From positions 21,204,001-21,268,000 of the forward strand of contig NC_135760.1 of the NCBI RefSeq assembly GCF_052425735.1: a DNA stretch of 64,000 nt. The letters run 5' to 3'. Under the pieces are notes generated by a model, which had not been told where the DNA came from, ran no database searches, and saw only the letters and a list, made by a program, of their open reading frames with translations. Shown piece after piece: positions 1,764-40,562 of the stretch (the first letter of the stretch is position 1; each line of letters opens with the position of its first letter). This DNA comes from Oculina patagonica (Eukaryota). Position numbers and translations under genes: made by a program.

Positions 1764-4202
1764 TCAATGTCCTACAAGTTTTTCTAGCTCATTTGTGAAC
1801 TTGAGCAAATGAAACAAGTTTTTCAGTTTAAGAGTTTTTTCTAGACCCTTGTAGAAGTATTCCGGGCATTCTCCGCGGAGCTTCTGAAGATCGATCAATG
1901 TTTGCCCATTTAATTCCGAAATATTTTTCTTTTTGCACACCTTTGCCAATCCAATTTCTTTGAGCCATTTCTTGACATCTTGATTTGTCCAGCCAGATAC
2001 ATCTGTCGCTGGGAATGGGGGTGGGGGTGGGGGTGAGGCTGTAACAACACTGGCCTCACTTGGTCGAATGACTGCCTCTGGTGGCCCATCCGTCGCGTCG
2101 CCATCTTTTCCTCTTCCTCCTAACTCCTTGATAAGTTTTCCAACAGCAGAATCAACAACATGTTTACTCTGAAAGCCAATCCATAGTTTTGTCCCCACCA
2201 GCATTCCTAACCAGCCGTCTGCCTGGTAATTGCGTTGCATCATCAAAGGAATGATGTCTTTTCTCAGTTGATACGCGTATTCGGCTTCTGATCGACAGTT
2301 AGGGCTTTCTTTGTAGCGTTGTGACAGGCAGACCAGCACAACAGCGGCGTCTTCGACGGCCTTGGCCATCGCTTCTAGTGTGGACCCACCCATCTGCTCC
2401 AGATCCATCCACACTCGATATCCATTGGCCTGAAGCTTGTTCTTGACTTCCACTAAGATTTCCTGGGAATCCCATTGGTAGCTGATCATCACGTGATTTC
2501 CAGTGGCTTCTTTAGTCTTGTCGGCATTGTTTCTTGCTGTCTTTCCTTCAATCTCCCACAATGCACCTGCCGCTGCCTTTTGCACCTCCGGGTTTCCACT
2601 GTGGTGTAACTCGCGTAATGTATCCAACGCCCCTTCTTCTTGCCTAATCACATCTTTGTTGAAGTCGTCAAACGCCAACATCCACAGAGCCCTTGCAGCA
2701 CTTGCGCGTTCCTCGTCATCATTTGAAGTCTTCAGAATCGACGTTAGCACACGTACCGCTCCATTTTTGCCCAGAATCTTGTTGTTGTCGTCGTCGTTGA
2801 TGGCAAGGTGGCTAAGTCCTTCTGCAAGCTCTGTCGCGGAATATCCGAGGTATCGTCGGTCTTCAGACTGACATGCTCCGTATAACTTTGTTACGATAGA
2901 GACAAGCAGGTTTTCGTCGGCTGAAATTAAATGATTGGTTTCTTCATTTACCAGGTACCCAAGGCATAGCAAGGCTTCAGTAGCAATGTTTTCATTGTTA
3001 ACCTTGGCAAAATAGAGTAATGTCTCCTCGCTGTTAGCAAACAACTCACGGTCTCTTAGCCGTCGCGAAATGTTGTACAAAATTCCGAGACATGAATCGA
3101 TAAGTTCGACTGACTCGGATTCATTTTGCCAGTTTCCATTTTCCCGAAGACGTATTATATTTTCAAGACACATAGAAACTACTCCCGCTTTGGCACTCGC
3201 CGAGCAAAAGCCGTCGGTGATGTCTGAAATGTTATGAATCGTTCCGAGCACTGTTTGGAGACAATCAAAACAAGTGAAATCCCACGATTTCTCATCTGCG
3301 CTTTCATGGTCTGATTCATCACCCATCTCGTAGTAATCGTTGAAACAATTCTGAGCGAACTTTTGCAATACCGATGCGCCGTCGATTTCTACCACAAAGT
3401 CCACGATTTCGGTGTTTTCTCTAGCTTCGCTATAGGATGTAGTGAACATGTTAGCAATAGCCTCGCCCACCAGCTCCGAATTATTCGCGAAAGTGTTTCG
3501 TAACATTTGCATATTCTTAAACATTGTTTGCAGATCGTCGGCTTGTTCCGGGTAGTTTATCTTGTATCTTTCAAGCGTATCTATGTGTAACATAGCCCAT
3601 TCAGTGTTATCTTGAATCGAATTCGTCTCATTTCTCTCGTGCTCCCTGGGCGGCCTGTCGTGACTCAACCACTGTTCCCCGGGGGGGGGTACTCCCTATA
3701 ATGGCCTATACGGGGAGGCTCCGCCCGAAAGGGGTACCTTTTTTAGGCTTCAGGTATATAAAAGGGTAGGGATTTTACGAGTTAAAGTATATGAAAGGGT
3801 ATGGAAATCTGTCATTTGGCTATTTAAAAGGGCCTTTAATTAAAATATTTCGAACAGACGCAATTTATGGCTGTATTATTTTAATTTATTGAGCGCTACA
3901 TAAAAATGACAAGAAAACGTCCTATTTTAAGTCCACGCCATGTCTCTTAGGTATATGAAAGGGGTACCTTTTTCAGTTAAAGGTATACGAAAGGGGTACA
4001 ATTTCTGTCAAAAATGGTATATAAAAGGGTAAGGGGTTAGAACTTGGGGCGGAGCCTCCCCGTATAAAACTTTTTTGAGTACCCCCCCCGGGCACTGTTC
4101 TTGAAGCACCTTTGGTTGAGCGGCATTTTGCATTGGAGATTCTGGAGAGTTGGACTGAGTGACCGCCGCGTTACTTTGTGGCTGCACCGTTTGAAGCTCC
4201 AT
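1764..4202 (-). CDS. ARM-repeat / TIR / SAM protein, paralogue 1 (inverted, interrupted by a MITE at 3678-4092; may be a pseudogene or rescued by splicing)
   Basis: ATG at 4202 gives MELQTVQPQSNAAV...QPKVLQEQ, which aligns to the N-termini of paralogues 2 and 3. After the MITE the frame resumes as WLSHDRPP and stays open to the stop at 1764. Contains ARM repeats (ELAEGLSHLAIND, AARALWMLAF, AAAGALWEI), a TIR domain (HVMISYQW...SPNCRSEAEYA) and a SAM-like tail (WTNQDVKKWL...NGQTLIDL). Confidence 0.85.
3678..4092. mobile_element. 415-bp hAT-like MITE inserted in the coding sequence of paralogue 1
   Basis: TIR CCCG(n)TACTC / GAGTAC(n)GGG with an 8-bp TSD CACTGTTC at 3670-3677 and 4093-4100. Paralogues 2 and 3 show the empty site. 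Confidence 0.92.
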
Positions 4203-4542
4203 ATTGATTGAACTTGCTAGATTACTGTGCGGCCGCAGAAACGATACGATATCAGTTCTTGAACGCTGTCGCAGTTGCTGTATGCGGAACTGAATTGGGT
4301 TGTTATCGAAGACACTACTCGCCTTGATTTCAAACAGCAACAAATTTAGCAGAGATCGTCACGCGAACACAACGTCCCGGGTTTATACTTAAAAGACGGT
4401 GTGTAGTTGAGAATGTAGTTTTTCCGTTAGCTACATGTGGAAAACAAACAGAATATTTTCCGTTTCCAGGCGAAATCAGTCATTTAGCAGTAGATTTCTA
4501 GGCCGTGACCCAGTGACCTGAGTGACGTCAATGTAATTTTGC

Positions 4543-4995
4543 GGTTGATTTCCACTGTCGCGTAAATATTTACGTATGTAAAACGTGCGTTTCCATGTGT
4601 TTAACTTAACAATAAATCATCGCTTAGACCATAGAGCAAAATAGAATTGCTGCTCAGTTAGAAATAACCAGTACGAGATATAAATGAAAAAGTCAGTTTA
4701 AAAGTAGCACGAAAACAACTCTGATATCTCTACCTTCAAAGCCTTCAAAAGCGATCAAAGTGCCTTTGACCTTTAATACTTACGGCAGAGTATCGTATAT
4801 CGCATGTCACACTTCAACATAACACACTTCTTGTTGAACAGCAACAAAAGGAAACATGAACGCTATATTGCTACTGGGTACGTCTAAAAGCCTTAGGCTT
4901 TCTTGTTAGCCAAAAGGGTGGTTAAACATTAACCACCCGGTTTCAATCTACTCAGTAGTTTCTTGTTAATTTTTTACGCGACAGTGGAAATTTGC
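4543..4995. mobile_element. Degenerate MITE related to the Harbinger/Tourist-like element at 14015-14170
   Basis: GATTTCCACTGTCGCGTAAA at the left end and TTTACGCGACAGTGGAAAT at the right end. Confidence 0.5.
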
Positions 4996-5409
4996 CAACG
5001 TACGTCTTTAAACGCGTATAACGCACGTAATTTTAATCCCTCAAGTGGCAAGTAATTTAAAACATTTCCTCCGTCCCATTCCCCTTCCCCCATTGAAGCA
5101 ATTTCAAGTGGGTGATAAAAGATGACCAGTTTTAAGCCAATCAACATGCGTGACCTTCAATGCCCTACCGACAAAAAAAACGACGACAAAAAAAATAGCC
5201 GAAGGTAGATTATGAACCGGGGGGGGCACCAGACCCCCACCCGTTTCTTTTTCACGTGTGTCGAACGTACGTAAATGCCTGCCATCCTGAACTTTGGCGC
5301 CCAAAAGCAAGGAGATCGCGGATAATTTGATGTGCCAGCCGCCAAAGTAAATGGCGCCCGCTGCATAATTCATAATCCCCGATTATTGCTCCTGATAAGA
5401 CAGCTTGTT

Positions 5410-5635
5410 CAAAACCGTTATCAAGTGGGTGAATACCACACGCTAGAAAATGAAATGCGTGAAAATGACCACAGGTCATTTTATAAATACTTCCGGATTA
5501 CACTTCAGGCATTATTGGACCACTTCCTTTCTCTTATGGGGCCGATATCGCAATGCTGCGATCGAAGAGTCGTGTACCTATCAGTTCTGCTAAACGTCTT
5601 GCCGTTACTCAGCGTTTCTTAGCTACCAGTCATTC
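5410..5635 (+). pseudogene. Decayed PIF/Harbinger transposase fragment
   Basis: GEYHTLENEMRENDHRSFYKYFRI...LSLMGPI, then after a frameshift PISSAKRLAVTQRFLATS. This resembles the Harbinger N-terminal signature ISPxERLAVTLRFLATG. Confidence 0.6.
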
Positions 5636-6989
5636 CCTTCAGACTATATCACTTAATTAATAAGGTTTAGTCAGAATTAGTCATGGCCGTCTTTGGTATT
5701 CTATCACAGCTATACCAATAACGTTAAGGAAATTATTATAGCATAAACGTAAACAAGATTGACCAATGAACAATTTGAGGTCATGGTGACGTCAAAATCT
5801 GTTTCCATGGCAACGTCACGAGGTTAAAGATGCCCTATTTTGGATCTTTCTAGGCTAATAACTCAAAAACTACCCGGTGAAAGTTCTTCTTTTTCACTAT
5901 TTTTATCCAACCATCAAAATAAACATTTTTGCAAATTTTTAAAGAATTCTGTCAAAAAGGATTCGGAGTATAAATTTAAGGTGGCTCTGTACATTTCTGA
6001 CAGATTTGTTTAAAAAATTGCCAGATCGTTTCTCTTGTCCTTTAGACAAAAATATATGAAAAACAAAAACTTTTACCGTCTACTGAGTTTTAGAGTAATT
6101 AGCCTCAAACAGTCAAAATTAAGCTATCTTTGACCACTTTTGTAGCTGCCATGGCAACGAATTTTGACGTCACAAGAACTCCAATTTGTTTAGTAATAAG
6201 ATCTTTACAAGGATGTTCTGAAACTTATAAATTTTACGCGTGCAATTACGTGTGTTGATCTGACTTAACGTTGTCAATTTCGAATGCCATGTTTATTTCT
6301 AGGTATTTACGTACGTTACACGCACGTATACGCACTGAGCGATCGTGAGGGTTTTCGCATTTTTTTCGCGGTTGTCTGCGGTTACGCAGCGATTTACTGA
6401 TCATACTTTTGGATTTTGTCACTTGACACCACTTGCCATGTCGACGCCATTTTGTTTTAATCGCCGTCGACATATTCAGATGTAGAAGCACTTTTTATAG
6501 ATGAAGTTCGAAAATTTTCAGCAATATGACCCCGCGGCCAGGGTTCGAACCCGGACCGCTCGATCCGGAGTCCGGTGCACTAACCATTAAATATTGCCGC
6601 GAACTATGTACTGAGACAATGTGTATCTACGTTGTAATTCACTTAAAAGTCCATTTTCAAATATGCTTTTTACATGTCACAGTTTACTAGAAATTGGGCA
6701 AGGCACTTTACTCTTAATGTGCCTCTCTCCACCCAGGTGTAGAAATAGGCACCGGCGACATAATGCTGGGGAGTATCCTGCGATGGATTAACATCCCATT
6801 CAGGGTGGAGTAGAAATATTCCTAGCCGGGATAAGCTCCGGCAAGTATGGGCCGCATGGCTCGAGGCTTCCCTATTACGGGGTGTCACAACCTTATCAAC
6901 CAGAAACCAATATTGGAAACCAAAAACCTTTTTTCGTCCCCGCCTTTCCGCCTCCCCCTCCTTCATTACAATCTAGGTAGTTGGCTAAG

Positions 6990-7285
6990 TTGTGGGAGGC
7001 GCGGTGGCCTAATGAATAGTGCGCCTGACTCTGGATCGAGCGGTCCGGATTCGAGCCCTGGCCGGGGTCACTGTGTTGTGTTCTTGGGCAAGACACTTTA
7101 CTCTCAGAGTGCCTCTCTCCACCCAGATGTATAAATTGGTACCGGCGACATAATGCTGGGAAGGGTACCCTGCGATTGACTAGCATCCCATTCAGGGGGG
7201 AGTAGAAATATTCCTGGCCGCTTAATGCTACGGAAACCGGAATAAGCTCCGGCAGTATGGGACCCATGGCTCAAGGCTTCCCCCT
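6990..7285 (+). mobile_element. tRNA-derived SINE (partial copies also at about 6530-6590 and 6695-6870)
   Basis: tRNA-like head GGGAGGCGCGGTGGCCTAATG...GATTCGAGCCC followed by the body TGTGTTGTGTTCTTGGGCAAGACACTTTACTCTC. The same body recurs at 14960, 28275 and 34905. Confidence 0.8.
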
Positions 7286-7326
7286 TGGCTACGCGTTGAC
7301 TACGCGTGGAACAAATCACTGCTCAC

Positions 7327-9059
7327 CTGTTCCTGGACGTCTTCAACAACAAGCTTTAGTGACTTGCGCAGTACATTGTAAGATCGATACGTCTGCGTTC
7401 TCAGCAGGCCAATGGACTCCAGCAGAGAAAGCGTCCTGTACGCATGCTCAAAACCATAAGTCTTGAAGAACATAGAAAACCACGTAAGTCTTTTTTAACA
7501 ATCTTTGTTTGGGTTGGGAAATTGGGAAAGAGAAGAAAAGGGAATTTTTAGAAAGAGAAAATGCAAAAAGAGGGGTCGATTAGGAGAGTTTTGTATCAGC
7601 ATGGTATCTGGTGATATTCCTCTCAATTTCGCAAGAAAAGTTTTAATGTTTACAAATTTCTTCATTACACCAAGACATATACAGGCATAGATTGAAACTT
7701 TTGTTTTCCAATTTTTATTGAACAACATGACTAAGCAAGGCTGATACGGCAAACATAATGTTACTTAGCGACATCGCTAAAGAATGAGGGTCGAAAATGG
7801 TCGCTGTTTCACAAACTGAAACATTCAACGCAACAAGACAACGGACAACACCAACCGGTAGAATTTCACGACAGTAGAACTCCAGCATCGTGGATTTGAA
7901 GCCGTTATTCGTCAAACATTGAGCACACAGCAAACGAAGCACCTTGTGAAAAGTGAAAGAAAATTAAGAAAATCAACGGCAGTTAAGTAGCGTAAGCGAC
8001 AGGTCGAGAAGGGAGGAGGGGGTGGGGGGAGGGGAACAAGCGAGGATCGCGAGAAAAGGAAACGAATAGCACGATCCCACGTAACGTTTTCATTTCACGC
8101 TTTACTTCTTCCTTGCCCGCACCTGCTTTGGAGGGTAGGAGAGTGGTCACGAACTTGGTCAAACATTTCTAAACTTATCTAAATGTGGATGTGTAGATAG
8201 TCCTGCAGGAACCCTTATTTGAAACCTTGTGTATTGCTTAGGGAACCATACACCCTGTTGTTGTGTTTCCTTTTGTTCTCTCGGAAAATATAACGTGAAA
8301 CCGACTGCAATTCAATTGCATCGGCAGTCGAGTGACTTCAGTATCAACTTCAAGATGACAAAGGGGAATTTACCACCTTAGCCAACCTGTGAAGCTACCA
8401 TTTGAACTCCAAATGACTGGAGGCTAACACAAGCTTTTTGAATTTGCCACGGTGGCCGTCCTACTTTTATCAACCAAAAGTTGGTAATAAATTACTTTTT
8501 TCTCCAGTTACTGTTTTATGGCTCTGAAACGTGGAGAGTAACAGAAACAACCTCCAACAAACTGCAGTCCTTTGTCAACAGATGCCTGAGGTCCATCATG
8601 GGCATCCACTGGCCAGAGGTCATAACGAACGAAGAACTGTGAACAACAACTGAGCAGGAAAGGATCAACATCCAGATAAGAAGGCAAAAGTGGGGTTGGA
8701 TTGGGCACACCCTCAACTGCAATGTCACCAAGCAGGCACTGAGGTGGAACCCACAGGGGAAGAGGAGCCGAGGCCGTCCCAGAAACAGCCGGAGGAGGAC
8801 GGTAGATGACGAGGCGAGCAAAGCAGGCTACACCTGGAGGCAGATTGAAAGGATAGCCCAAAACAGACAACGATGGCGAGCAACAGTTTCCACGGACCTA
8901 TGCTCCACTGGGAGTGAAAAAAGAAGAAGACTGTTTTATTAAAATTTGTGCACAGGTAATGCATGTTCTCTTTTCCTACCGTTATAAGCGGTTTCTTTAT
9001 TCCAAAGCATTTCTCTATGTAGGGGTTGATTTTGTCCGTGTCCAAACCTTGCGCGAGTT
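7327..9059 (-). pseudogene. VPS33A: VPS33A 3' fragment, copy A (3 exons: 8980-9059, 7856-7942, 7327-7461), decaying
   Basis: AG/GT-bounded exons encode [47 protein letters not shown] and [11 protein letters not shown]...VEDVQEQ, matching VPS33A. Downstream exons are missing and the copy carries replacement changes absent from the other copies. Confidence 0.85.
8520..8929 (+). mobile_element. 5'-truncated RTE-like LINE 3' end
   Basis: Encodes YGSETW...LQSFVNRCLR...WIGHTL...ALRWNPQGKRSRGRP, with an (AAG)n tail. 10-bp TSD ACTGTTTTAT at 8510-8519 and 8930-8939. The paralogous intron at about 18472 is empty. Confidence 0.85.
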
Positions 9060-9455
9060 CTGAGAAGTAAACAGAAAAAGAGAATATAATGTATTAATTG
9101 ACAGAATCAAATACCTGGTATTTTACATTTTTTTAAAATGTGCCAGTAAAGTTAGAGCAAAAGCAAATAAAAACATAGAACCATGAATTTTACCAGACAT
9201 AGAAACGGAATTTTACGGTATACGAATAGTCTCTGAAACAAACACATAGTTGTAAATTCAATTGCATAGATAGTTATTAATATATCGCTTAAAAATCAAA
9301 AAGCTTGTGAAACCAGGAGCCATAATCGATTATGGCTCCTGGTGAAACTTAGTAATCGCTAAATATTTAAGCTCGTCACGAGAATTATTTGACTTTCAAA
9401 AACTGCAACATTGCTACATGGCAAAAGCGCTAATGAACCAACACATTCTTTGTAA

Positions 9456-9700
9456 TACAGTCGAAGCTCTCGTAAGCGGACACCCTCGGGACGCGAAAAA
9501 AGTGTCCGTAACTGGAGCTGGCCGCTTACAAGAATGGTTCTCGTAAGCGGCCACTTGAGGCGTAAGGGATATATGGCCGCTTACGGGAGCTTGCCCAGCT
9601 AACAATAACCGGACGGACGTGGATGGCGACAAAACAAGCACTGAAATATGTTACTGTAATTACTGTAAAATCATTGTGTCCAACAGCGATGTGAAGTGTC
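9456..9700. mobile_element. Truncated copy of the CAGTCGAAGCTCTC MITE family
   Basis: Closely matches the left part of the complete element at 13713-14334. Confidence 0.7.
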
Positions 9701-9714
9701 CACAAAGAGGAATA

Positions 9715-10051
9715 CCGTAGAATTCCGGTTATAAGCCCTGGGCTTATACAACTTCGTAAGGGTTTTTGGGTGGGCTTATATGCGGAGGGGCTTATATTCG
9801 GGAGGGCTTATAAGAGGAAGGAAAAAAACGTTTCGAAAAGAGCCTCAGGAGTGTTGATCGAAATACGCTTTTAAGTTAAAACGCACAAAAAAGCAACATT
9901 TAGCCCTGTTCAGTACTGTCATCCGGTAGAGGGGGGCTTATATCCGGGGGGGGCTTATAACCGGATGTATCTTTTTGTTTCCAGGTTGATGGGCCTATAA
10001 CCGAGGGGGCTTATAAGTGGGGGGGGGGGGCTTATAACCGGAATTTTACGG
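9715..10051. mobile_element. TA-flanked Tc1/mariner-type MITE (CCGTAAAATTCCGGTTATAAGCCC family)
   Basis: TIRs with TA duplications and internal GGGCTTATA repeats. Further copies at about 17043-17352, 34158-34422 and 52480-52790. Confidence 0.85.
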
Positions 10052-10670
10052 TATGCATTTTGAATTACGATGTACAGAATTACAATACAGAACAACCCGG
10101 TTAAGAAAGAGATATACCATCATTTTATGGTGGGAAGAAAACAGTTTACGTACCAAACTTCAATGCTTACAAACGACGTAAGATGGTAATTAAATTAGGT
10201 ATTGTTTGTGAAACGTTTCAAACAATGATTGCGTGATGAGCCAAACGAGATTTGCGTGACAGTCCACCCCCAGCGATAACACACAGCATGTCACTGACCA
10301 GCGTGACGCCATAGCAAATTTACATTAACGTCACTGGGTCGTCGCCTAGAAATCTGCATGCTAAATAATTGATTTCGACAATAAACGGAAAATATTCTGT
10401 TTGTTTTCCACATGAAGCCGACGAAAAAACTACAATCTCAACTACATACCGTCTTTTAAGTATATACCCGGGACGTTGTGTTCTCCGCTAAATTAGTTGC
10501 TGACTGAAATCAAGGCGAGTAATGTCTTCGATAACAACCCAATTCAGTTCCGCATCATAGCAACTGCGACCGGGCTCAAGAAACATCATTATATCGTTGA
10601 TGCGGACGAACAGTAATTATAATCTAGCAAGTTCAATAAATAATAATAATAATAATAAAAAAAAAATAAT

Positions 10671-12725
10671 ATGGGTGCTGGAGGATCAACAAAGCTCAAA
10701 ATAGTACAGCCGCCAGCTAACGCGGCGGTCATTTCCAACTCTCCAGAATCTCAAATACAAAATCCCGTTCAACCAAAGGTGCTTCAAGAACAGTGGTTGA
10801 GTCACGACAGGCCGCCTAGGGAGCACGAGAGAAATGAGACGAATTCGATTCAAGATAACACTGAATGGGCTGTGTTACACATAGATACGCTTGAAAGGTA
10901 CAAGATAAACTACCCGGAACAAGCCGACGATCTGCAAACAATGTTTGAGAATATGCAAGTGTTACGAAACACTTTCGCGAATAATTCAAGAGCACAAGAT
11001 CGGTATACGGAGCTGGTGAGCGCCAAAATTGACCACTTGATCACTACAAGCCGTAACATTGACACTTTAGACGAGACTAGCGGGACCAGAATCATGGAGT
11101 TTGTTTTGAAAATCGACGGCGCAGCGGTGTTGCAAAAGTTCGCTCAGAATTGTTTCAACGATTACTACGAGATGGATGATAAATCAGACGATGAAAGCGC
11201 AGATAATAAATCAAAAGGTTCCACTTGTTTTCATAGTCTCAAGTACGTGTTAATAACAATTCAAAACTTTGCAGACTTTCAAGACGCCTTTTGCAAGGCG
11301 AGTGCTAAAGCGGGAGTTGTTCCCATGTGTCTAGAAAATATCATACGACTCGATAAGGAAAATGACAACTGGCAAAATGGAGATGAAGGATCAGAGCTAC
11401 CTCAACTAATCAAGTCATGTCTCGGAATTTTGCACAACATTTCACGGAGGTTGAGAGATCGTGAGTTGTTCCCAAACAGCGACGAGACTTTGCTCTATTT
11501 TGCCAAAGTTGAGATGACAGGAATTGCTACCAAGGCCTTGCTAAGCTTAGGGTACCTAGTAAATGAAGAAACCAATCATTTAATTTCAGCGGATGAATCC
11601 TGGCTTGGCTTTATCGTAACAATATTAAACAAAGCATGTCAGTCTGAAGACCGAAGATGTGACGGATTTTCCGCGAAAGAGCTTGCAGAAGGACTCAGCC
11701 ACCTTGCCATCAACGACAACAACAAGAAGACCCTGGGCAACAATGGAGCCGTACGCGTGCTAACGTCAATTCTGAAGACTTCTAACGACGAAGAGGAACG
11801 CGCGAGTGCTGCAAGGGCTCTGTGGATGTTGGCGTTTGACGACTCCAACAAAGATGTCATTAGGCAAGAGGAAGGGGCGTTGGATACATTACGCGAGTTA
11901 CACCACAGTGGAAACCCGGTGGTGCAAAAGGCAGCCGCTGGTGCATTGTGGGAGATTGAAGGAAAGACAGCAAGAAACAATGCCGAGAAGACAAAAGAGG
12001 CAACTGGAAATCACGTGATGATCAGCTACCAATGGGATTCCCAAGAAATCTTAGTGGAAGTCAAGAACAAGCTTCAGGCCAATGGATATCGAGTGTGGAT
12101 GGATCTGGAGCAGATGGGTGGGTCCACACTTGAAGCGATGGCCAAGGCTGTCGAAGACTCCGCTGTTGTACTGGTCTGCGTGTCACAGCGCTACAAAGAA
12201 AGCCCCAACTGTCGATCAGAAGCCGAATACGCCTATCAACTGAGAAAAGACATCATTCCTTTGATGATGCAAAGCAATTACAAGGCAGACGGCTGGTTAG
12301 GAATGCTGGTGGGGACAAAACTATGGATTGGCTTTCAGAGTAAACATGTTGTTCATTCTGCTGTAGGAAAACTTATTAAGGAGTTAGATGGAAGAGGAAA
12401 AGATTGCGATGCGACGGATGGGCCACCAGAGGCAAACATTCGACCAAGTGAGGCCAGTGTTCTAGGAGCACCACGCCCAGCCACGGATGTCTCTGGCTGG
12501 ACAAATCAAGATGTGAAGAAATGGCTCACAGAAATTGGATTGGGGAAAATATGCAAAACGAAAAACATTTCGGAATTAAATGGGCAAATATTGATCGATC
12601 TTCAGAAGCTCCGCGGAGAATGCCCGGAATACTTTTACAAGGGTCTAGAACAAACTCTGAACCTGAAAAACATGTTTCATTTGCTCAAGCTCACAAATGA
12701 GCTAGAAAAACTTCTAGGACATTGA
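10671..12725 (+). CDS. Intronless ARM-repeat / TIR / SAM protein, paralogue 2 (684 aa, predicted N-myristoylated)
   Basis: Uninterrupted ORF starting MGAGGSTK. ARM repeats, a TIR domain at about 12010-12390 with the putative catalytic Glu in CRSEAEYA (codon 12219-12221), and a SAM-like domain at about 12490-12720. Confidence 0.93.
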   Translation: MGAGGSTKLKIVQPPANAAVISNSPESQIQNPVQPKVLQEQWLSHDRPPREHERNETNSIQDNTEWAVLHIDTLERYKINYPEQADDLQTMFENMQVLRNTFANNSRAQDRYTELVSAKIDHLITTSRNIDTLDETSGTRIMEFVLKIDGAAVLQKFAQNCFNDYYEMDDKSDDESADNKSKGSTCFHSLKYVLITIQNFADFQDAFCKASAKAGVVPMCLENIIRLDKENDNWQNGDEGSELPQLIKSCLGILHNISRRLRDRELFPNSDETLLYFAKVEMTGIATKALLSLGYLVNEETNHLISADESWLGFIVTILNKACQSEDRRCDGFSAKELAEGLSHLAINDNNKKTLGNNGAVRVLTSILKTSNDEEERASAARALWMLAFDDSNKDVIRQEEGALDTLRELHHSGNPVVQKAAAGALWEIEGKTARNNAEKTKEATGNHVMISYQWDSQEILVEVKNKLQANGYRVWMDLEQMGGSTLEAMAKAVEDSAVVLVCVSQRYKESPNCRSEAEYAYQLRKDIIPLMMQSNYKADGWLGMLVGTKLWIGFQSKHVVHSAVGKLIKELDGRGKDCDATDGPPEANIRPSEASVLGAPRPATDVSGWTNQDVKKWLTEIGLGKICKTKNISELNGQILIDLQKLRGECPEYFYKGLEQTLNLKNMFHLLKLTNELEKLLGH

Positions 12726-13712
12726 GATAACATGAAGATGCACCAGTTTTGCAAAACTGATACATGGCCAGCATTGCTTCTTATTCGTCTTATTTAGTCA
12801 ATGTTATTTTAGTAATAATATGATTATTATTATGGCAGTTGTGATTGCCATAGCCTCCATTTCGCGGTAAAGATTGCCTGTTGCATCATCGTCCAAAAAC
12901 CGCAGACTACATCGTGAATTAATCGCGTTGCAAGTTGTGAGAGCATCGCTCTACCCCCCCCCCCCTCCCCCCCCTCCCCCGATACTTGTATTCCTTCTAG
13001 TCTAGTCAGAACTGCGGTTTGCTCTGATTGTGAAACATTTGAAAACTGACAGCGGAAGTAGCGTGGGATTTTGCGCTTGCTCGCAAGCTAGATTTCGCCT
13101 GGAAATGGAAAATATTCTGTTTGTTTTCCACATGCAGCAGAACTACATTTCGTATTTCGTTTACTTTAACCTGGGACGTTCTATTCGCGTGACGTTCTCC
13201 GCAAAATCCGCTCTCTGCCATTCGAGTGATCTCGGATCACTGATCCTGATCCAGATCAACTCAAAGGAACGCACCCTTAGACGTATTCAATAGAAACCAC
13301 TTTAAGAATATTATTTTTATATCTATGTTTCTATTTTACATTTACATTTGTAAGAACAGGAGCTCACCAAAAGAGCTAATATTGATTTCTTTGTTTTTAT
13401 CTATAAACGCTCGTTCATTCCCACGTATAACCTTGATTGATTATCGACTAACGTTTCCGTCCAGTTTATTAGAAAATGATTGAGGGGTTTCTTACTCGTT
13501 ATTGCACGTGTGCGGGGGCTGTTCTTGTTTAATATCGCCCAAATCCTTACAAGAAAGATCATGGGCAATATTCTCCCAGCACGGTTCCGAACTAGCGAGA
13601 GTGAAAAGTTTATTACATGGCTCTTTACCGCGCTATTACCCGCATTTTACCAGTCAGCTGGGCATAAACTCTGAGCCAATCAAAGCGCGATTTTTAACGG
13701 GTTCTAGCAATA

Positions 13713-14334: not shown

Positions 14335-14578
14335 TATAACAATGATTCTTGTTGACCAATTAAGTAATAGAAAAATTAATCTTAATAAAGTTCTATAAAT
14401 TTCTGTTAATTGCGTTGTTGCTTGACAAACTAAATCAGTCAGGTCACTGGCAAAAACACTTGCGGGTTCTTGGAACGAGTTGGCAAGCATTTGCATGTGG
14501 AAACCATTTTGATTGACAAAAGTGTCTGAAGAAACTAACAGTCTGAAAAAAAAATTGAAGCGGCGATGAGTTGGGGTG

Positions 14579-17500
14579 CTACGTGAATGGGTTGGCCTCG
14601 TCTGGCACGCCTTCCTCCATAATGGACTCAATTAGTGACTTGCCGTTAATTATCTTCGTCGTAGCCACTAGATAGTCTGTGGGACCTGGGACAGAACAAA
14701 ATAAAGGAGTTTGAAGTTGTTTTGTGATGCAAAGATGAGTCAACATAACATTTACTACAATCAATTTTGAAAACAAGAAAAAACAGTTCACCCTCGATTT
14801 TTTAAAATATATATATATTTTAAAAGAAACTGTGCATAAAGAAAACGAACAACTTTAGAAATAGTTTAATAAAAAACTTTAGCAGCGGCATAATCAAACA
14901 GTTACCGAATGGAAAAAAGTCACTCTCCACAAATTTTAAAAAAAGGTAAAGTCTGGAACAGTGGATACGAGCCTAGTAGCCCATCAGAGCGGGGCTTATC
15001 CCGGTTTCCGTGGAATAAAGCGACCAGGACTATTTCTACTCCCCCACCCCCCCCCCCCACCCCTGGATGGGATGCAAGTCCATCATGGGGTTACCCTCAG
15101 CATTATTTTGCCAGTACCCATTCATACACCTGTGTGGAGAGAGGCACTATGAGAGTGAAGTGCCTTGCCCAAGAACATAACGTAGTGCCCCGGCCGGGGC
15201 TCGAACTCGGACCGTTAAACCGGAGTCCAGCGCGCTAACCATAAGGCCACCGTGCATCCCATATAAGAAAATTGTGCCAGAGCAGTAATTTGCTATCGAA
15301 AATACTAAGGATTTAGATGCAAACAAAGAAACCATGATTTAAATACTCACTATTTTCCTGTTGAGCAAGAAATCTTAGTGCGGATATTTCGGCGTGTGTA
15401 CAGCCACCAATGAAATAAACTAGCGTTACTTTTGGTGGACCATCCACGGAACTCTCCCCACCGGTCGACGGTCCTAAGTGGATTATTAAAAATAATAGAT
15501 GAAATGTTTGCTTCACAAGGCACTACGTTCCAGTATGACTTTCATTCTGTTACGACGCATAAATTTTTATTTTACGTTATTACAACCACAACACAGAAAC
15601 TTCACTGGACGCTTGTATGCTATCATTGTCTATTGCCAACCCGTGAATTAAATTGGCTAAGTCGGCTTTGGTTGCCACAGACATCAATTTTTCGTCAAAA
15701 CGTTCCTGACTCTTCCCTAAAAAGTAAAATTCCCCTGACCAAATAAATAGAAATTGTCGTAGAGGCCTCCAGCCTCTGCTTCCAAAAAAGACCCCGCTTA
15801 TCAGAGAGTAGATTAAAGAAGAAAACGGTTACGATTATAAACTCAATCAGTCTTACTTTTCTGAAGACCAGGAGGCAGTCGCTGGATTTCTTCAACTGCA
15901 GGACCCGGGAGCAACCGAAGAACCTGAAGAAAAATAACAAAACTTGAACTTCTATTTTGTTCACCATCATCATCATTAGTTCTGAAAATCCAGTGATTCA
16001 TTAGTGGTATTGTAAACTGTCAGCTTAGCAGTGTATTGAAGCATAACACAAAGTAAAACTATGAGTTAGAACAGTGTGTAAAATCACTGCTTCATAAACT
16101 CGCGCGACGCGTGCTAACCAATCAGGACGAAGATGCTGACTTCTTAGCCAAACAGGTACAAAACCAAAACCAATCACGAAACGACTCAAGTAACTTTCCC
16201 GCCATTTTCCACCATTACATGTTTCCCTCGCTTGCCTCAAGTCACAAATTTTCCCGCGCCTACCACCGGTTACATATTTTTCCCGCGCTTTCCACAAATT
16301 AACCCGCGCTTACTATCGGTTAATTTTTTCCCGCCCTTGTAGCCCATTACATGTTTTTGAATCGAGTCCTGACTGGCTTATGCTCTTCAACGATCCATTT
16401 GATCACGTGATTATCGGGTTGTTACCTCTTCTAGTCCTCTCCAGCCCTGGGGCCGAGCCAAAAACTGAGCCAGTCGTACAGTCAGCGGTGCGTATCCTGA
16501 AAACACGTAAGCGATGTCATTTGGATTCTGCAAAGTTAGAACAAATAATACGATAAGTGCACTTCACGTAATCCAACCTTAACTAATATAATTTTTGGTG
16601 TCGTAACTGTCAAATTCTGTTCTTGACGAATTTGTAAAAATAATTTGCCTTTAAATAAAGAAAATTTAATTTGTACATGGTTTTTATACAAATGACAGCA
16701 CATGTAAATATTTATATTCGAAGACTGGTGGCATACTTCAACGAACCACAAGGTGATTTCTTAAATTCGAAGAGAGTCTTTACATTATAAGGACGGGGAT
16801 CATATATTTCTCTTAGTCAGGAGCCAAATACGGCTCTTGTCTGATTAGACAAAGAGCAGTCTCTTTCTTTTTTCCAAATTTGCACAGAAGAAAAACGAAA
16901 TTAGAGAGCAGCTCTATTTTCTGAAGGGGAAGATACGACAACAAAAACTGTCCTAGCTATCGCGCGAATTTGAGTTCTTCTTGAGTTTAAAGCCGTTATT
17001 ATAATATTTCAGTTAATCAGTCTATGAACAGTTGGTCATACAGGAAAATTCCGGTTATAAGCCCCCCCGCTTATAAGCCCCCCCGGTTATAGGCCCATCT
17101 ACCTGGAGACAGAAAATACATCCGATTATAACCCCCCCCCCCCGGATATAAGCCCCCCTCGGCCGGATGACAGTACTGAACAGGGTTAAATGTTGCTTTA
17201 TTATGCGTTTTTAACTTCAAAACATATTTCGATCAACACTCCTGTGGCTCGTTTCGAAACGTTTTTTTATTCCGCTTATAAGCCCCCCAGAATATAAAAA
17301 ACCCCTTACGAAGTTGTATAAGCCCAGGGCTTGTAACCGGAATTTTACGGTAGCCCCTTTAAAATCTAGCTGAGTATGTCAGCACAAGCAACAAATCACC
17401 GCTCACCTGTTCCTGGACGTCTTCAACAACAAGCTTCAGTGACTTGCGCAGTACATTGTAAGATCGAGACGTCTGCGTTCTCAACAGGCCAGCGGACTCC

Positions 17501-18612
17501 AGCGGAGAAAGCGTCCTGTACGCATGCTCAAAACCATACGTCTAGAAGAACATGGAAAACTTCTTTAGTCTCTTTGTTTGGGTTGGGAAAATGGAAAAGG
17601 GAAAAGGGGAATTCTCCGAAAGAAAAAAAAATTCAAAAAAGAAGAGTCGGTTATGATAGTTTTGTATCAGCATAGTACAGGAATAGAACAATTTTTCCCA
17701 ATTTGTTTTGTTGAACAATTTGACTAAGCAAGGCATACACAATGTTACTCAGCAACATCGCTTTAGAATGAGGGTTGAGAAAGGACGTCGTTGTTTCACA
17801 AACAGAAACACTCGACACAACAAAACAATGGACGACACAAACCTGTAGAATTTCACGACAGTAGAACTCCAGCATTTTAGGTTTGAAGCCGTTATTCGTC
17901 AAACATTGAGCACACAATAAACGAAGGACCTTGTGAAAAGTGAAAGAAAATAAAGAAAATTTGCAGCAGATAAGAAGCGTACGCGACAGGTGAGAGAAGG
18001 GACGAGAAAATGGGGGGGGGGGGGGGACAAGCGCGGAGCGCGCGAAAAGGGAACGAAATGCGATCCCACGTGACGTTTCATTTTACGCTTTACTTTTTTC
18101 TTCCCCAAACCTGCTTTGAAGGGTACGAGAGTGGTCACGAACTTGGTCCATCAGTGCTAAACTTATCGAAATGTGAATGTGTAGACAGGCCTGCAGGAAC
18201 ACTTATTTAAGACCTTGTGTATTACTTAGAGACTCATACACCCCATTGTTGTGTTTCCTTTTGTTCTCTTGGAAAATATGACGTCGGCAGTCGAGTGACT
18301 TCAGTATCAACTTTAAGATGGTGCCGGAAGGTGAATTTACCGTCTTAGCCAATTTGTAAAGCTGCTTTTTCGGAACTCCAAATGACGGAGGGCTAACGTG
18401 AGCTTTTCCAATTTGCCACGGTGGCCACTCTACCTCTATCAACTTCAAGTTCAAACTAGTTTTTTTTTTCAGTTGCTGTTTTATTAAGAGTTGTGTACAG
18501 GTAAACATAACCGCCAAGTTCTCTTTGCCTACCGTTATAAGCGGTTTCTTTATTCCAAAGCATTTCTCTATGTAGGGGTTGATTTTGTCCGTGTCAAGAC
18601 CTTGCGCCAGTT
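14579..18612 (-). CDS. VPS33A: VPS33A 3' half, copy B (7 exons: 18533-18612, 17843-17929, 17407-17541, 16426-16527, 15857-15923, 15351-15473, 14579-14685); no 5' exons adjacent
   Basis: All exons have AG/GT ends and compatible phases. They encode [10 protein letters not shown]...[21 protein letters not shown]...[22 protein letters not shown]...[17 protein letters not shown]...PFT*, the Sec1/Munc18-family VPS33A C-terminus. Confidence 0.85.
14960..15262 (-). mobile_element. tRNA-derived SINE in the last VPS33A intron
   Basis: Same family as 6990-7285. The same insertion is present at the matching site of the paralogous block (28275-28560), so it predates the duplication. Confidence 0.8.
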
Positions 18613-19573
18613 CTGAGAAGAAAATAGAAAAGGAGGATAATAATAGGGATATATTCATAAACAGAATCAAATACCTTGGTATTTCTACATTTTTTGAAAA
18701 GATGTGCCAGTAAAGTTTAGAGCCACCTTATATTTTTATTTAGGGGGAATTATACCCGAAGGTCGTTTTTTCATAGCTTAACAGGAGTTTAACGTAAATG
18801 TCTCGTTCGCGTTTCAAGGAATCCAAAAACGCCCTCATTATCTCATATATCTACGTTTAACCCCTTGGCGCCGGGATTTTCTTTGAAAAAAGCACATTTT
18901 TTGGACATTTTTGACATTTTCTGGTCAGATATGAACTAAATCTGCTTCAAACTACTGGAATCAGCAATTGGAACATGAAGGCATACCTTTCTTCTACTAG
19001 CATCACATTTTATGACATTACTGTTCGGGCATGCTAAAAAAAAATGGTTTAAAATTGGTAGACGGACACCAGACAGTCCCCTGACAACCTGGAGTGCTCT
19101 TGGGTGGGGTCAACTGTCTGGCGGTGTTTCAATTTTTTTTTCTTTTTTCAATCCCTTCTTTAAACCTCTTAAAATTTAGGTATAATGCCCCCTTAACGTA
19201 ATGTGACTCTCAAGCCACTCGAACACTGGTGTACCACAAACATAGCTCTAGCCATAGTTATTAGAGGGAAATGGTTATGAGACTTATGACGCTCGGCAAA
19301 CTTGAAAGAAGCAAACAAAGATCCTAAAATTTAAGTTGGAAGGTCCACGACCGTGCACAATCTTTTGCTTTCACTCACACACTTTGGTTGAATTGCGTGA
19401 CCGTCACGTTTTTATTGGTTAGTTGCTCGGACACATCTCATAATCTATCGTGTTTTGTGCACGGCCGAGGCCAGAAAAGCAAACAAAAAAACATCAAACA
19501 GAGAATATTGCCAGGTTTCATAACCATTTAACGTTATTAACTATGTCAGTTTTAGTCATATAGGAGACTAGCT

Positions 19574-20171
19574 TGGGAGCTACGGTTTCCAAAGAGGGCG
19601 GAGGCACTGAAGACATCCACAACAGAGTAGTCAAAGCGAGAGGGGTATTCTTGAAATTGAAAAAGATCTGGAGTAGCAATAGCATCGGTCGACGAACCAA
19701 AGTCAGACTATATAAGACACTGGTAAAGCCAGTCTTGATGTATGGCTGCGAGACGTGGAAGATGAATAAAAGTGATGAGAACAAAATCGACGTCTTCCAA
19801 AGCAGATGTCTTAGACGGATATTTAAAATACGCTGGCAGGAAAGAATTACAAACAATGAAGTCCTGAAGATGGCTGAGATGGAAAACCTCAGTTGGGGCG
19901 TGCGAAAGAGAAGATGGAAATTCATCAGCCACATAATGAGGAAAGAACCAAATAACGACTGCAGAACTGCATTAACCTGGACCCCAGAAGGGCGGCGAAA
20001 ACAGGGCAGACCAAAGACAACATGGAGGAAAACAGCAGGGAGAGAAAGGGATAAAGCTGGATGGAAGAACTGGAGCGAGGTACAAATTGCAGCGGCTGAC
20101 AGAGATGGTTGGCGGAATTGTGGTGAGGCCTTATGCGCCACATGGCACGAAGAAGATAGGTAACAGGTAAC
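19574..20171 (+). mobile_element. 5'-truncated RTE-like LINE (reverse transcriptase C-terminus)
   Basis: ORF ...KPVLMYGCETW...FQSRCLRRI...WTPEGRRKQGRPKTTW with a (TAACAGG) tail. 12-bp TSD AGGAGACTAGCT at 19562-19573 and 20172-20183. Confidence 0.9.
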
Positions 20172-21460
20172 AGGAGACTAGCTCTATTCGAATCTGCCTT
20201 ACTCTGTTTCTGTAATACTACAATCTTGGACAGTTGTAATGAAAAATAAAGACCACCCTCCTCCATTTCAATGTAGGGGGAAAATGGCGCGTTTTTGGTT
20301 TTAGCGAGAATTCTTCATTAATTCGTGCAAGGGAGGGAGCATTTCTCTTTTTCCGTCGAAGACTGTAGCCTAGTGTTTTAAATTGTTTTATTGGTGATAA
20401 CAAAAAGCGGAGCAGCCAGGAAAGGAATTGGGAGGAAGGTTTGCATTACAACAGTCGATAATACAATCTTTACTGGCATCAGTGTTCACATTTTGTCTCA
20501 TTAGCATACGACTTTTGCGTAGAGAAGGTACACTGCTATATACCAATTTACTTGAAAAGTTTAAAGAGCTTGTGAAACTCAGTAATCGGGGACAGAATAT
20601 TTTAGCTCGTTACGGGTAATATTGACTTTCAAAAACTGCAACATTACTGCATGACAAAAGCGCTAATGAACCCATTCATTCTTTGTAAAACTTTAAGTTG
20701 TTAAACCTGGGGCACACAAAGCCATTTAATACATTGGGCGACAGTTATCTGATTATTTTTGTAGCTCGATCAGAGAATAAAGCACTTATGCTAATGAGAC
20801 AATTATTGTAAACAAAGATTCGTCTGTATGCATTTGAAAGGAAGCCACGAACCATAAGCAATCACAGAAGGGCGTTGGTTTGCTTTTGTCTACAAAAAGG
20901 AATATGCATTTTGAATTACGAAGTAGGATTATGCGAATTACAAGACAGAACAACCCGGCCAAGAAAGAGATCTACGTACCACACTTCAAGGCTTACAAAC
21001 AACGTAAGATGGTAATTGAATTAGGTATTGTTTGTGACACGTTCCAAACAATGATTGCGTGATGAGCTAAAAGAACGTTTGCGTGACTGTCCACTCCCAG
21101 CGATAGCACAGAGCATATTACAATTTACTTTGGCGTCAGTTGGTCGCCGCCCGCAGATCTACATACTAATTGATTGCCTTCGCCTGGAAACGGGAAATAT
21201 TCTGTTTGCTTTCCACCAGTGCGGCCGACGGAAAAACTACAATCTCAACTACACTTCGTTTCGTATTTCAGTTAATTATTAACCCGGGATGTTGTGTTCG
21301 CGTGACGTTCCCCAGTAAATGGGTTGCCGACTGAAATCAAGGCGAGTAAATGTCTTCGATAATAACCCAACCCAGTTCCGCATCATAGCAACTGCCACCG
21401 TGTTCTAGAAAATTCATGTCGCTCGTGTAGCCAAACAGTAATCTAGCAAGTGCCATCAAA

Positions 21461-23503
21461 ATGGGTACTGGTGGATCAAAAAAGCTTCAAATAGTGCAGC
21501 CACAAGCTGACGAGGCGGTGAATTCCAGTTCTCCAGAATCTCCAATGCAAAGAGCCGTTCAACCAAACGTCCTCCAAGAACAGTGGTTGAGTCACGACCG
21601 GCCGCCCAGGGAGCAAGAGAGAAATGAGACGAATTCACTTCAAGCCGATAACGTTGATTGGGATGTGTTGCACAGAGGCACGCTTGAAAGATACAAGATA
21701 AACAACCCGGAGCTAGCTAGCGATCTGCAAACAATATTTGAGAACAAGCAAGTGTTACGAAACACTTTCGCGAATAAATCAAGAGGACATGATCGGTATA
21801 CGGAGCTGCGCAAGGCTATTTATAACATGTACACTACATCCTATAGCAAGGCTACAGAAAACACCGAAATCGTGGACTTTGTGGTGGAAATCGACGTCGC
21901 AGAGGTGTTGCAAAAGTTCGCCCAGAATTGTTTCAACGATTACTACGAGATGGTCGATGAATCAGACGATGAAAGCACAGATGAGAAATCAAAATTTATC
22001 ATTGATCATTTTTGTCTCAAGTACGTGCTACTAACAATACTAAACTTTACAGACTCTTATCACGGCTTTTGCAAGGCGAGTGCTAAAGCTGGAGTAGTTC
22101 CCATGTGTCTAGAAAATATCAAACGACTCGATAAGGACCATCATGACTGGCAAAATGGAGGTGGGAAATCAGTACCACGTGATCTAATCTCGTCATGTCT
22201 CGGAATTTTGCACAACATTTCACGGCGGCTAAGAGACCGTGAGTTATTCGCTAACAGCGACGAGACTTTACTCTATTTTGCCAAAGTTGAGAACACAGAA
22301 ATTGCTACTAACGCCTTGCTTTGCCTTGGGTACCTAGTAAATGATGAAACCAATCATTTAATTTCTGCGGACGAAAACTTGCTTCGCTTTATTGTAACAA
22401 TGTTGAACGAAGCATGTCAGTCTGAAGACCGACGATCCGGCGACGGATTTTCCACGAAAGAGCTTGCAGAAGGGCTCAGCCACCTTGCCATCAACGACAA
22501 CAACAAGAAGACCCTGGGCAACGATGGAGCGGTACTTGTGCTAACGTCGATTCTGAAGACTTCAAACGATGACGAGGAAAGAGCAAGTGCTGCAAGGGCT
22601 CTGTGGATGTTGGCGTTTGACGACTCCAACAAAGATGTCATTAGGCAAGAAGCAGGGGCGTTGGATACATTACGCGAGTTACACCACAGTGGAAACCCGG
22701 AGGTGCAAAAGGCAGCTGCTGGTGCATTGTGGGAGATTGAAGGAAAGACAGCAAGAAGCAATGCCGAGAAGACTAAAGAAGCCACTGGAAATCACGTGAT
22801 GATCAGTTACCAATGGGATTCCCAGGAAATCTTAGTGGAAGTCAAGAACAAGCTTCAGGCCAATGGATATCGAGTGTGGATGGATCTGGAGCAGATGGGT
22901 GGGTCCACACTTGAAGCGATGGCCAAGGCTGTCGAAGACTCCGCTGTTGTACTGGTCTGCGTGTCACAGCGCTACAAAGAAAGCCCCAACTGTCGATCAG
23001 AAGCCGAATACGCGTATCAACTGAGAAAAGACATCATTCCTTTAATGATGCAAAGCAATTACAAGGCAGACGGCTGGTTAGGAATGCTGGTGGGGACAAA
23101 ATACTGGATTGTTTTTCAGAGTAAGCAGGTTGTTGATTCTGCTGTTGAAAAACTTATCAAGGAGTTAAATGGAAGAGGAAAAGATGGCGACACGACGGAC
23201 GGGTCACCAGAGGCAGTCATTCGACCAAGTGAGACCAGTGTTGTTGCAGCACCACGCCCAGCGACGGATGTCTCTGGCTGGACAAATCAAGATGTCAAGA
23301 AATGGCTCACAGAAATTGGATTGGCACAAGTGTGCAACGAGCACATTACGGGATTTAATGGACAAACATTGATCGATCTTCAGGAGCTCCGCAGAGAATG
23401 CCCAGATTACTTCTACAAGTATCTAGAACACACTCTAAACTTGCAAAACATGTTACATTTGTTTAAGTTCAGAAAGGAGCTAGAAAAACTTCTAGGACAT
23501 TGA
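21461..23503 (+). CDS. Intronless ARM-repeat / TIR / SAM protein, paralogue 3 (680 aa, predicted N-myristoylated)
   Basis: Uninterrupted ORF starting MGTGGSKK, with the same architecture and a nearly identical TIR domain (SPNCRSEAEYAYQLRKDIIPL). Confidence 0.93.
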   Translation: MGTGGSKKLQIVQPQADEAVNSSSPESPMQRAVQPNVLQEQWLSHDRPPREQERNETNSLQADNVDWDVLHRGTLERYKINNPELASDLQTIFENKQVLRNTFANKSRGHDRYTELRKAIYNMYTTSYSKATENTEIVDFVVEIDVAEVLQKFAQNCFNDYYEMVDESDDESTDEKSKFIIDHFCLKYVLLTILNFTDSYHGFCKASAKAGVVPMCLENIKRLDKDHHDWQNGGGKSVPRDLISSCLGILHNISRRLRDRELFANSDETLLYFAKVENTEIATNALLCLGYLVNDETNHLISADENLLRFIVTMLNEACQSEDRRSGDGFSTKELAEGLSHLAINDNNKKTLGNDGAVLVLTSILKTSNDDEERASAARALWMLAFDDSNKDVIRQEAGALDTLRELHHSGNPEVQKAAAGALWEIEGKTARSNAEKTKEATGNHVMISYQWDSQEILVEVKNKLQANGYRVWMDLEQMGGSTLEAMAKAVEDSAVVLVCVSQRYKESPNCRSEAEYAYQLRKDIIPLMMQSNYKADGWLGMLVGTKYWIVFQSKQVVDSAVEKLIKELNGRGKDGDTTDGSPEAVIRPSETSVVAAPRPATDVSGWTNQDVKKWLTEIGLAQVCNEHITGFNGQTLIDLQELRRECPDYFYKYLEHTLNLQNMLHLFKFRKELEKLLGH

Positions 23504-40208: not shown

Positions 40209-40446
40209 TCACCTTTGTGAAATCGATCTGTGGTGCTTAGACAGAGCACGGAAGACGCGAAACACCTTTTCGCATTGCATATAGTGATCTGGCCTTTGAC
40301 CTGTGTGAGTGCGGAGGTGCATAGTCAGATGACTAAAGGTGTTGAACGCCTTGTTACATTGCGAACACTAATATGGCTTTTTGCCTGTGTGAGTACGGAG
40401 GTGTGCGGTCAGATGACTAAGCTGGTTAAACGCCTTGTTACATTGA

Positions 40447-40478
<32 letters not shown>

Positions 40479-40530: not shown

Positions 40531-40562
<32 letters not shown>

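Follow-up and report, generated by a model that had tools for sequence, protein, structure and literature searches.

A cluster of single-exon ARM-TIR-SAM genes in the coral Oculina patagonica and its place in an old family of candidate TIR enzymes

A stretch of 64,000 nucleotides from the scleractinian coral Oculina patagonica (assembly GCF_052425735.1, contig NC_135760.1, positions 21,204,001 to 21,268,000), hereafter called the window, carries a cluster of related genes for proteins that combine ARM repeats, a TIR domain and a SAM domain. The listing of open reading frames (ORFs) contained three long ORFs at the positions given in a first-pass annotation made from the sequence alone, and the ORFs, the Pfam matches and profiles of the SAM family agreed with the order described there, namely N-terminal tail, ARM repeats, TIR and SAM. 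Paralogue 2 (10671-12725, plus strand, 684 amino acids) is an intact single-exon gene as judged from its ORF, Pfam and AlphaFold models, and an identical annotated protein was found (P0001). Paralogue 3 (21461-23503, plus strand, 680 amino acids) is also an intact single-exon gene with the same architecture (ORF, Pfam). The main ORF of paralogue 1 (1764-3668, minus strand, 634 amino acids) encodes the three domains as well (ORF, Pfam), but it is severed from its start codon by a miniature inverted-repeat transposable element (MITE) with in-frame stops, so that only two members of the proposed three-gene cluster are intact. A tblastn search with paralogue 2 across the window found no copies beyond these three and a detached N-terminal piece at 4095-4199. 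The products of the three paralogues are 79-84% identical. Paralogue 2 starts with MGAGGS and paralogue 3 with MGTGGS, and the motif SPNCRSEAEYA, whose Glu is E517 in paralogue 2, is common to all three, as had been noted at first reading.

The coding sequence of paralogue 1 is broken after codon 36. The MITE-like element occupies 3678-4092 (415 bp, no strand assigned), has 16-bp terminal inverted repeats (CCCGGGGGGGGTACTC) and is flanked by an 8-bp target-site duplication (GAACAGTG) at 3670-3677 and 4093-4100. The detached 5' coding piece lies at 4093-4202 on the minus strand with its ATG at 4202; it reads MELQTVQPQ...VLQEQ and has no myristoylation motif. Element and target-site duplication together comprise 423 bp, which is a multiple of 3, yet the element contains in-frame stops, and read-through from the start of paralogue 1 reaches a stop about 25 codons inside it. 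Paralogue 1 was therefore rejected as a functional full-length gene as it stands. The empty site is preserved at a paralogous locus (L001:10085-10130), where the intact sister gene P0004 is uninterrupted. The insertion is recent, because the 634-codon ORF downstream of the MITE is still open and has diverged little from P0004 (synonymous divergence, dS, 0.02-0.08).

Paralogues 2 and 3 lie within a direct segmental duplication of about 10.8 kb, and paralogue 1 is inverted. The first unit of the duplication carries paralogue 2 (7300-12830, plus strand) and the second carries paralogue 3 (17390-23650); both were delimited by the direct-repeat families D2-D12 with spacings of about 10-10.8 kb. The block upstream of paralogue 2 (10317-10670, plus strand; repeat families D13, D15, D19, I11, I17 and I18), a putative promoter or 5' untranslated region (5' UTR), is matched by blocks upstream of paralogue 3 (21122-21460) and paralogue 1 (4282-4489, minus strand). 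Just 3' of paralogue 3, at 24051-24466, a tandem array with a period of 52 bp was observed, consisting of six overlapping 156-nt copies with 74-97% identity.

The protein encoded by paralogue 2 comprises a disordered tail beginning with MGAGGS (residues 1 to about 55), an ARM solenoid (residues about 55-431), a linker of about 15 residues (432-446), the TIR domain with E517 (447-575), a disordered linker of about 30 residues (576-607) and the SAM domain (608-684). In the AlphaFold model, residues 55-431 form a helical solenoid with a predicted local distance difference test score (pLDDT) mostly above 85. No signal peptide or transmembrane helix was apparent in this model, and no formal prediction was made. 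Pfam TIR_2 (E about 1e-23, 81-83 bits) and Arm (34-40 bits) scored above their cut-offs, and Pfam TIR reached 21-25 bits. Arm repeats N-terminal to a TIR_2 domain, the arrangement of the ARM-TIR class, were thus found by Pfam and in the model. At the C-terminus of single coral sequences, Pfam SAM_1/2/3 gave 15-18 bits, which is below the cut-off, and this part of the described architecture was rescued by family profiles. A profile of the last 85 residues of 40 sequences matched the SAM domains of liprin-beta, TEL/ETV6, SARM1 (SAM1) and SMS1 in the PDB, and a profile of 97 TIR-SAM sequences matched SMS1 SAM over the whole domain (E 1.5e-6) and SARM1 SAM1. In the green-algal homologues described below, Pfam SAM_2 scored 36 bits against a cut-off of 20.5 at the homologous position. 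The AlphaFold model of TIR-SAM (mean pLDDT 85.7) has a disordered linker of about 30 residues followed by a compact helical bundle with six DSSP helical segments (173-243 in TIR-SAM numbering, pLDDT 89-95). The C-terminal domain is a SAM domain.

An exhaustive HMMER search returned 6549 cluster representatives at E<=0.001, of which 640 also passed E<=1e-30. Of the 149 best representatives, 84 aligned across both TIR and SAM, and in most of these the alignment ended at or within a few residues of the protein's own C-terminus. Members were found in Pocillopora, Branchiostoma, Ptychodera, Haliotis, Gigantopelta, Dreissena, Sinanodonta, Owenia, Dimorphilus, Holothuria, Lingula, Lineus and Phallusia, and ARM-TIR-SAM proteins are present in amphioxus, hemichordates, molluscs, annelids, echinoderms, brachiopods, tunicates and green algae. 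The algal members (P0252, P0290, P0241 and P0254, from Pedinophyceae sp., Haematococcus lacustris and Tetrabaena socialis) are 35-38% identical to the coral protein and show the complete Arm - TIR_2 - SAM_2 architecture by Pfam; a Chlamydomonas member has been reported (Hurieva et al. 2026, bioRxiv 10.64898/2026.04.20.719644). In a picozoan protein of 1925 amino acids (P0185), the match was limited to the last ARM repeats and the TIR. The proteins of the window therefore belong to an independent and very old family that includes green algae and is not a coral oddity. Its occurrence in algae and animals may reflect ancient inheritance or transfer between the two.

The N-terminus was searched for the N-myristoylation consensus MG[^EDRKHPFYW]xx[STAGCN][^P] (PROSITE pattern PS00008). 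The consensus that the first-pass annotation had recognised is present in paralogues 2 and 3, and it is conserved across phyla. Among full-length coral homologues 88 of 111 carried it, and so did 52 of the 149 best distant representatives, corresponding to about half of the 108 that have at least 560 amino acids. Carriers include amphioxus (MGSAPTK), hemichordates (MGTGASK, MGCGASK), abalone, the annelid Owenia, the sea cucumber Holothuria and the mussel Dreissena, and several relatives have a Cys at position 3, a possible palmitoylation site. We infer that this frequency is far above chance. As the consensus recurs across phyla, membrane anchoring is a well-supported prediction from the sequences. 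Two of six Oculina paralogues (paralogue 1 and P0004) start with MELQTVQPQ instead of MGxGGSxKLxIVQP; about six codons including Gly2 are missing, so these copies should not be myristoylated.

Three further paralogues (P0002, P0004 and P0005) occur on the same Oculina chromosome, giving at least six copies. The locus L001 carries P0004 (670 amino acids, L001:10001-12013) and a 680-amino-acid copy, each in a single exon, and about 8.6 kb of this locus is 94-96% identical to the surroundings of paralogue 1. In a maximum-likelihood tree the six Oculina copies formed one clade (support 100/99), and two Desmophyllum copies formed a separate clade. These groupings indicate lineage-specific expansion or concerted evolution. 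In the same tree, the Desmophyllum copies lay farther from the Oculina clade than Acropora muricata P0028 did, which is at odds with the split between robust and complex corals and suggests older hidden paralogy or differential loss.

Desmophyllum pertusum (L003) has at least four single-exon copies, which adjoin a Sec1/VPS33A gene. In the Oculina window an exon-like ORF at 28420-28812 (minus strand) matched the Sec1 family and is VPS33A-like (profile positions 520-556). With a Sec1-family gene beside the cluster in both species, the linkage is conserved between Oculina and Desmophyllum. Farther along the window, at 40368-41270 (minus strand), a single ORF encodes about ten C2H2 zinc fingers in an array.

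In Oculina and Desmophyllum the gene length equals the ORF length. The term intronless, as used for these genes at first reading, hence holds for the coding regions, and introns in the 5' UTR could still exist. The amphioxus homologue gene spans 11.9 kb and the Pocillopora gene of the P0124 type spans 8.6 kb; neither is directly translatable, and P0124 is sister to the single-exon clade in the tree. Exact searches for the genes of the Haliotis and Acropora homologues gave no match. The single-exon branch of corals is therefore derived, because the outgroup genes have introns. Retroposition followed by tandem duplication is the simplest account of this branch, intron loss being the alternative.

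Contigs from sequencing runs whose RNA class is a guessed label tiled 10358-13115 with 90-99% identity and without intron-like joints, and on the unique flank 10161-10357 the contig depth was zero. The contigs are short, and many diverge by 5-10% and may come from paralogues or sister species. Members of the family are thus present in RNA-type libraries without intron joints, and the support for transcription of any individual copy is weak. Upstream of paralogue 2, a repeat at 9373-10160 had many internal joints and, in each of the four RNA-type runs, a summed contig depth of thousands to tens of thousands, which is very high compared with the tens to hundreds on the genes; a highly expressed or high-copy transposable element is the probable explanation, and related arms were found at 17136-17352. 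At 11966-12012, contigs of the RNA-type runs X2 and X5 skip 45 nt (15 codons, in frame) within the linker between ARM and TIR. This skip is more likely to come from a paralogue or allele whose linker is shorter than from splicing; the shorter side of the joint measures just 27 nt.

Selection was estimated by pairwise Nei-Gojobori omega on five Oculina paralogues. In the core TIR omega ranged over 0.16-0.18, and the last ARM repeats gave 0.12-0.21; at residues 85-205, in the N-terminal half of the ARM region, it rose to 0.7-0.96. The variability attributed earlier to the ARM region as a whole was thus borne out for its N-terminal half. Across the five paralogues omega clearly exceeded 1 in no window, so the data do not demonstrate positive selection. 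Among the copies in the window, dS was lower in the TIR, which may be due to gene conversion.

The position corresponding to E517 is Glu in 95 of 97 aligned homologues from the animal phyla and algae. In this alignment conservation is 95% or more at S511, C514, R515 and E517, and H448, M450, S452, Y453, W455, W476, D478, G484, Y508 and K509 are 90-100% conserved, as are S511, C514, R515, E517, Y520, K526, P530, Y537 and the stretch G541-W-L-G544. The hidden Markov model alignment placed E517 on the Glu of WCWDE (WCxxE) in the bacterial CRISPR-associated protein Cat1 and on the Glu of the HKE motif in TIR-1 and in a SARM1-TIR-1 chimera. Cat1 was also the best match of the TIR profile in the PDB (E 7.7e-9), and the matches were to enzyme-type TIRs (Cat1, TIR-1/SARM1 and RPS4); no MyD88 or TLR chains were among the PDB profile matches at E<0.01. 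The TIR model (pLDDT about 90 or more) superposed best on the TIR-APAZ protein of SPARTA (Z 17). SPARTA and Cat1 are both activated by oligomerisation, and their partner domains and triggers (Argonaute/APAZ and CARF, respectively) are unrelated to those of the present family. Superposition on the SARM1 TIR, which had been put forward as a check, gave a good fit (Z 14-16, root-mean-square deviation 1.9-2.7 Å) that does not discriminate, since adaptor TIRs fit nearly as well. The fold was accordingly dropped as a test of enzyme versus adaptor: Foldseek and VIA-align put TIRs that cleave nicotinamide adenine dinucleotide (NAD+) first, with MyD88, IL-1RAcP and Hydra TRR-2 close behind.

A published structural comparison covers a close homologue. 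The Pocillopora damicornis protein A0A3M6T9G3 (P0274) has a TIR about 80% identical to that of paralogue 2, with E575 at the place of E517 in the alignment. GLU575 was found at 0.63 Å from E85, the catalytic Glu of ThsB, the TM-align criterion being a distance below 3 Å (Hurieva et al. 2026, Table S2). Together with the alignment to Cat1 and TIR-1, this places the Glu at the catalytic position, as first proposed, and makes NAD+ cleavage a candidate activity predicted from sequence. A0A3M6T9G3 belongs to the TIR cluster A0A0B7AZE4_1, which also contains amphioxus, tunicate and Chlamydomonas relatives recovered here; in that study, unlike here, the flanking domain was annotated as a TPR-type solenoid only, no SAM was recorded, and only isolated TIRs were assayed (Hurieva et al. 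2026). TIRs of sibling clusters were active in the same work: that of Latimeria depleted NAD+, and those of Clupea, C. gigas and Adineta made cyclic ADP-ribose (cADPR). The active sibling TIRs carry the signature SxxC[KR]xE and GWLG as in the present family. By eye, the short fish proteins H2ZXV5 (Latimeria) and A0A6P8EVF3 (Clupea) and the C. gigas protein A0A8W8J0Z4, for which Glu-dependent NAD+ depletion or cADPR production was demonstrated (Hurieva et al. 2026), share the longer pattern H-[VI]-M-[IL]-S-Y-x-W...VWMD...S-x-x-C-[KR]-x-E...GWLG. They differ in belonging to other 40%-identity clusters; H2ZXV5 and A0A6P8EVF3 are TIR-first proteins of 236-296 amino acids, and A0A8W8J0Z4 is an oyster protein of 639 amino acids.

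From the observed architecture, motif conservation, Glu position, selection pattern, gene structure and duplication history, a membrane-tethered catalytic TIR that is regulated by the ARM region and requires oligomerisation driven by the SAM was proposed as the function of the family. We give this proposal about an even chance. The protein would be cytosolic, with Gly2 myristoylated co-translationally and the disordered tail of about 55 residues anchored to the membrane. The ARM solenoid, joined to the TIR by its short linker, would be a regulatory or ligand-binding module that keeps the TIR inactive, and in the coral branch the N-terminal half of this solenoid diverges fastest, as expected of a sensor array. 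The C-terminal SAM would self-associate on its flexible linker and gather the TIRs, so that a two-TIR active site might form around E517, and the assembled TIR might then cleave NAD+ with depletion or with cADPR-type products as the outcome. The single-exon branch in corals, probably derived from a retrogene, grows by local tandem and inverted duplication. A wider version of this proposal is more doubtful and is offered tentatively. The family might represent a pre-metazoan class of lipid-anchored TIR enzymes in algae and animals that is distinct from SARM1, SAM polymerisation at the membrane might switch on a cADPR-type messenger, and the coral cluster might serve as a fast-duplicating array of sensors whose individual copies toggle anchoring by starting with MG or MELQ.

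We infer myristoylation, autoinhibition and ligand sensing by the ARM region, assembly through the SAM, catalysis and an immune role. Several observations weigh against the proposed membrane-tethered enzyme. The RNA-type contigs are short and partly divergent and could have come from paralogues or from sister species. The TIR model fits adaptor-type TIRs nearly as well as enzyme-type TIRs (Hydra TRR-2, Z 16; MyD88, Z 14.7). Cat1, plant TIRs and SARM1 have a Trp at the fourth position before the Glu, where this family has Asn. Finally, four isolated TIRs from the same 40% cluster (Chlamydomonas, Branchiostoma lanceolatum, spotted gar and Phallusia) had no recorded activity in a screen that combined expression in Escherichia coli with liquid chromatography-mass spectrometry (Hurieva et al. 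2026). The control TIRs RUN1, RPS4 and RPP1 were also blank in this screen, and its authors name the missing native oligomerisation of isolated domains as a limitation (Hurieva et al. 2026); the false-negative rate of this assay is high. The missing Trp was set aside as evidence against catalysis, since Asn also stands there in the Latimeria TIR, which depletes NAD+, and Ser in the Clupea TIR, which produces cADPR.

The silence of the four TIRs and the fit of the model to MyD88 and Hydra TRR-2 (Z 15-16) would also be expected if the proteins were non-enzymatic adaptors or scaffolds, in which the TIR makes TIR-TIR contacts with TLR/IL-1R-like receptors or with MyD88, the ARM and SAM regions are interaction modules and the Glu has a structural role. 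The ARM-TIR and ecTIR-DC proteins are treated as putative adaptors in the literature. However, the SxxCRxE and GWLG motifs and the BB-loop pattern VWMD...G are near-invariant from green algae to chordates, and to our knowledge green algae have no TLR/MyD88 pathway. The PDB profile matches are enzyme-type TIRs and not MyD88 or TLRs, and sibling clusters are catalytically active (Hurieva et al. 2026). An adaptor function is accordingly considered unlikely, although it is the strongest of the alternatives.

Catalysis without pathogen sensing was rated lower still and is considered improbable. The proteins would then be housekeeping or stress-linked enzymes of membrane NAD+/cADPR-Ca2+ signalling, or executors of cell death like SARM1, and the expansion would reflect dosage or subfunctionalisation. 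The age of the family and its presence in unicellular and colonial algae are in line with such a function, as is the fact that overall the variable ARM half has an omega no higher than 1; the single young clade of all six Oculina copies would also fit concerted evolution or a simple amplification. Against it, the expansions in Oculina and Desmophyllum are tandem and lineage-specific, and the raised omega is limited to one surface-forming region, a combination that by analogy is typical of immune receptors.

The first-pass annotation had also described the family as a reshuffled SARM1, and this part of its interpretation did not survive, whereas the domain order, the myristoylation consensus, the Glu position and the variable ARM region did. 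SARM1, dSarm and TIR-1 have the same three domain types, a TIR of the TIR_2 type and an alpha-C Glu (E642 in the human protein) aligned with E517. Unlike them, the present proteins have a single SAM at the C-terminus after the TIR, an N-terminal myristoylation motif and a multi-copy tandem expansion. They were rejected as SARM1 orthologues because the order is ARM-TIR-SAM and not ARM-SAM-SAM-TIR and because at least six paralogues occur on one Oculina chromosome; SARM1 is typically present as one gene per genome (PMC7075850). The ARM part of the family profile did not match the SARM1 ARM region, the family profile matching SARM1 only via the SAM, and Foldseek matches of the whole model to SARM1 had template-modelling (TM) scores of about 0.2. 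Since algal proteins already have the complete Arm - TIR_2 - SAM_2 architecture, the arrangement is not a coral-specific reshuffling. An origin by domain permutation of SARM1, for which the shared domain types and the PDB profile matches to SARM1 SAM1 and the TIR-1 TIR could be cited, is highly improbable, as the ARM profile matches designed ARM proteins, Vac8, ODAD2 and plakophilin instead, the one SAM (not two) fits liprin, TEL and SMS1 equally well or better, the top TIR match is bacterial Cat1, the architecture is found in green algae and SARM1 sits in a different cluster of the published TIR clustering (Hurieva et al. 2026). By analogy, the working principle of the membrane-tethered enzyme (sensor or brake, oligomeriser, TIR enzyme) would be like that of SARM1, but the proteins do not belong to the SARM1 family.

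Part of this is already known. ARM-TIR proteins are described as a catalogued class that is expanded in many invertebrates and has no assigned function (Zhang et al. 2015, PMC4346834; Aplysia immunome, PMC9334734). The ARM-TIR/ecTIR-DC class is also cytosolic, has ARM repeats followed by TIR and occurs in the same phyla as the homologues found here. The TIR of the present family has been assigned to a cluster and assessed for its Glu, and a sample of its members has been assayed (Hurieva et al. 2026). In the available portions of PMC4346834 and PMC9334734, no C-terminal SAM, myristoylation motif, algal members or single-exon coral branch is reported. The C-terminal SAM, which standard annotation overlooks, the myristoylation motif shared across phyla, the algal members and the expanding single-exon coral branch linked to VPS33A thus appear to be under-described.

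Corals have large repertoires of TIR genes without assigned function. Whether animals have TIR enzymes other than SARM1 is a live question, and a 2026 preprint argues that they do (Hurieva et al. 2026). The present finding extends the ARM-TIR label and does not establish a new mechanism. The family offers a test case in which a catalytic signature is combined with a SAM as candidate oligomeriser and a candidate membrane anchor. As isolated TIRs of the family were silent, a comparison of TIR with TIR-SAM would directly test whether oligomerisation is the missing ingredient.

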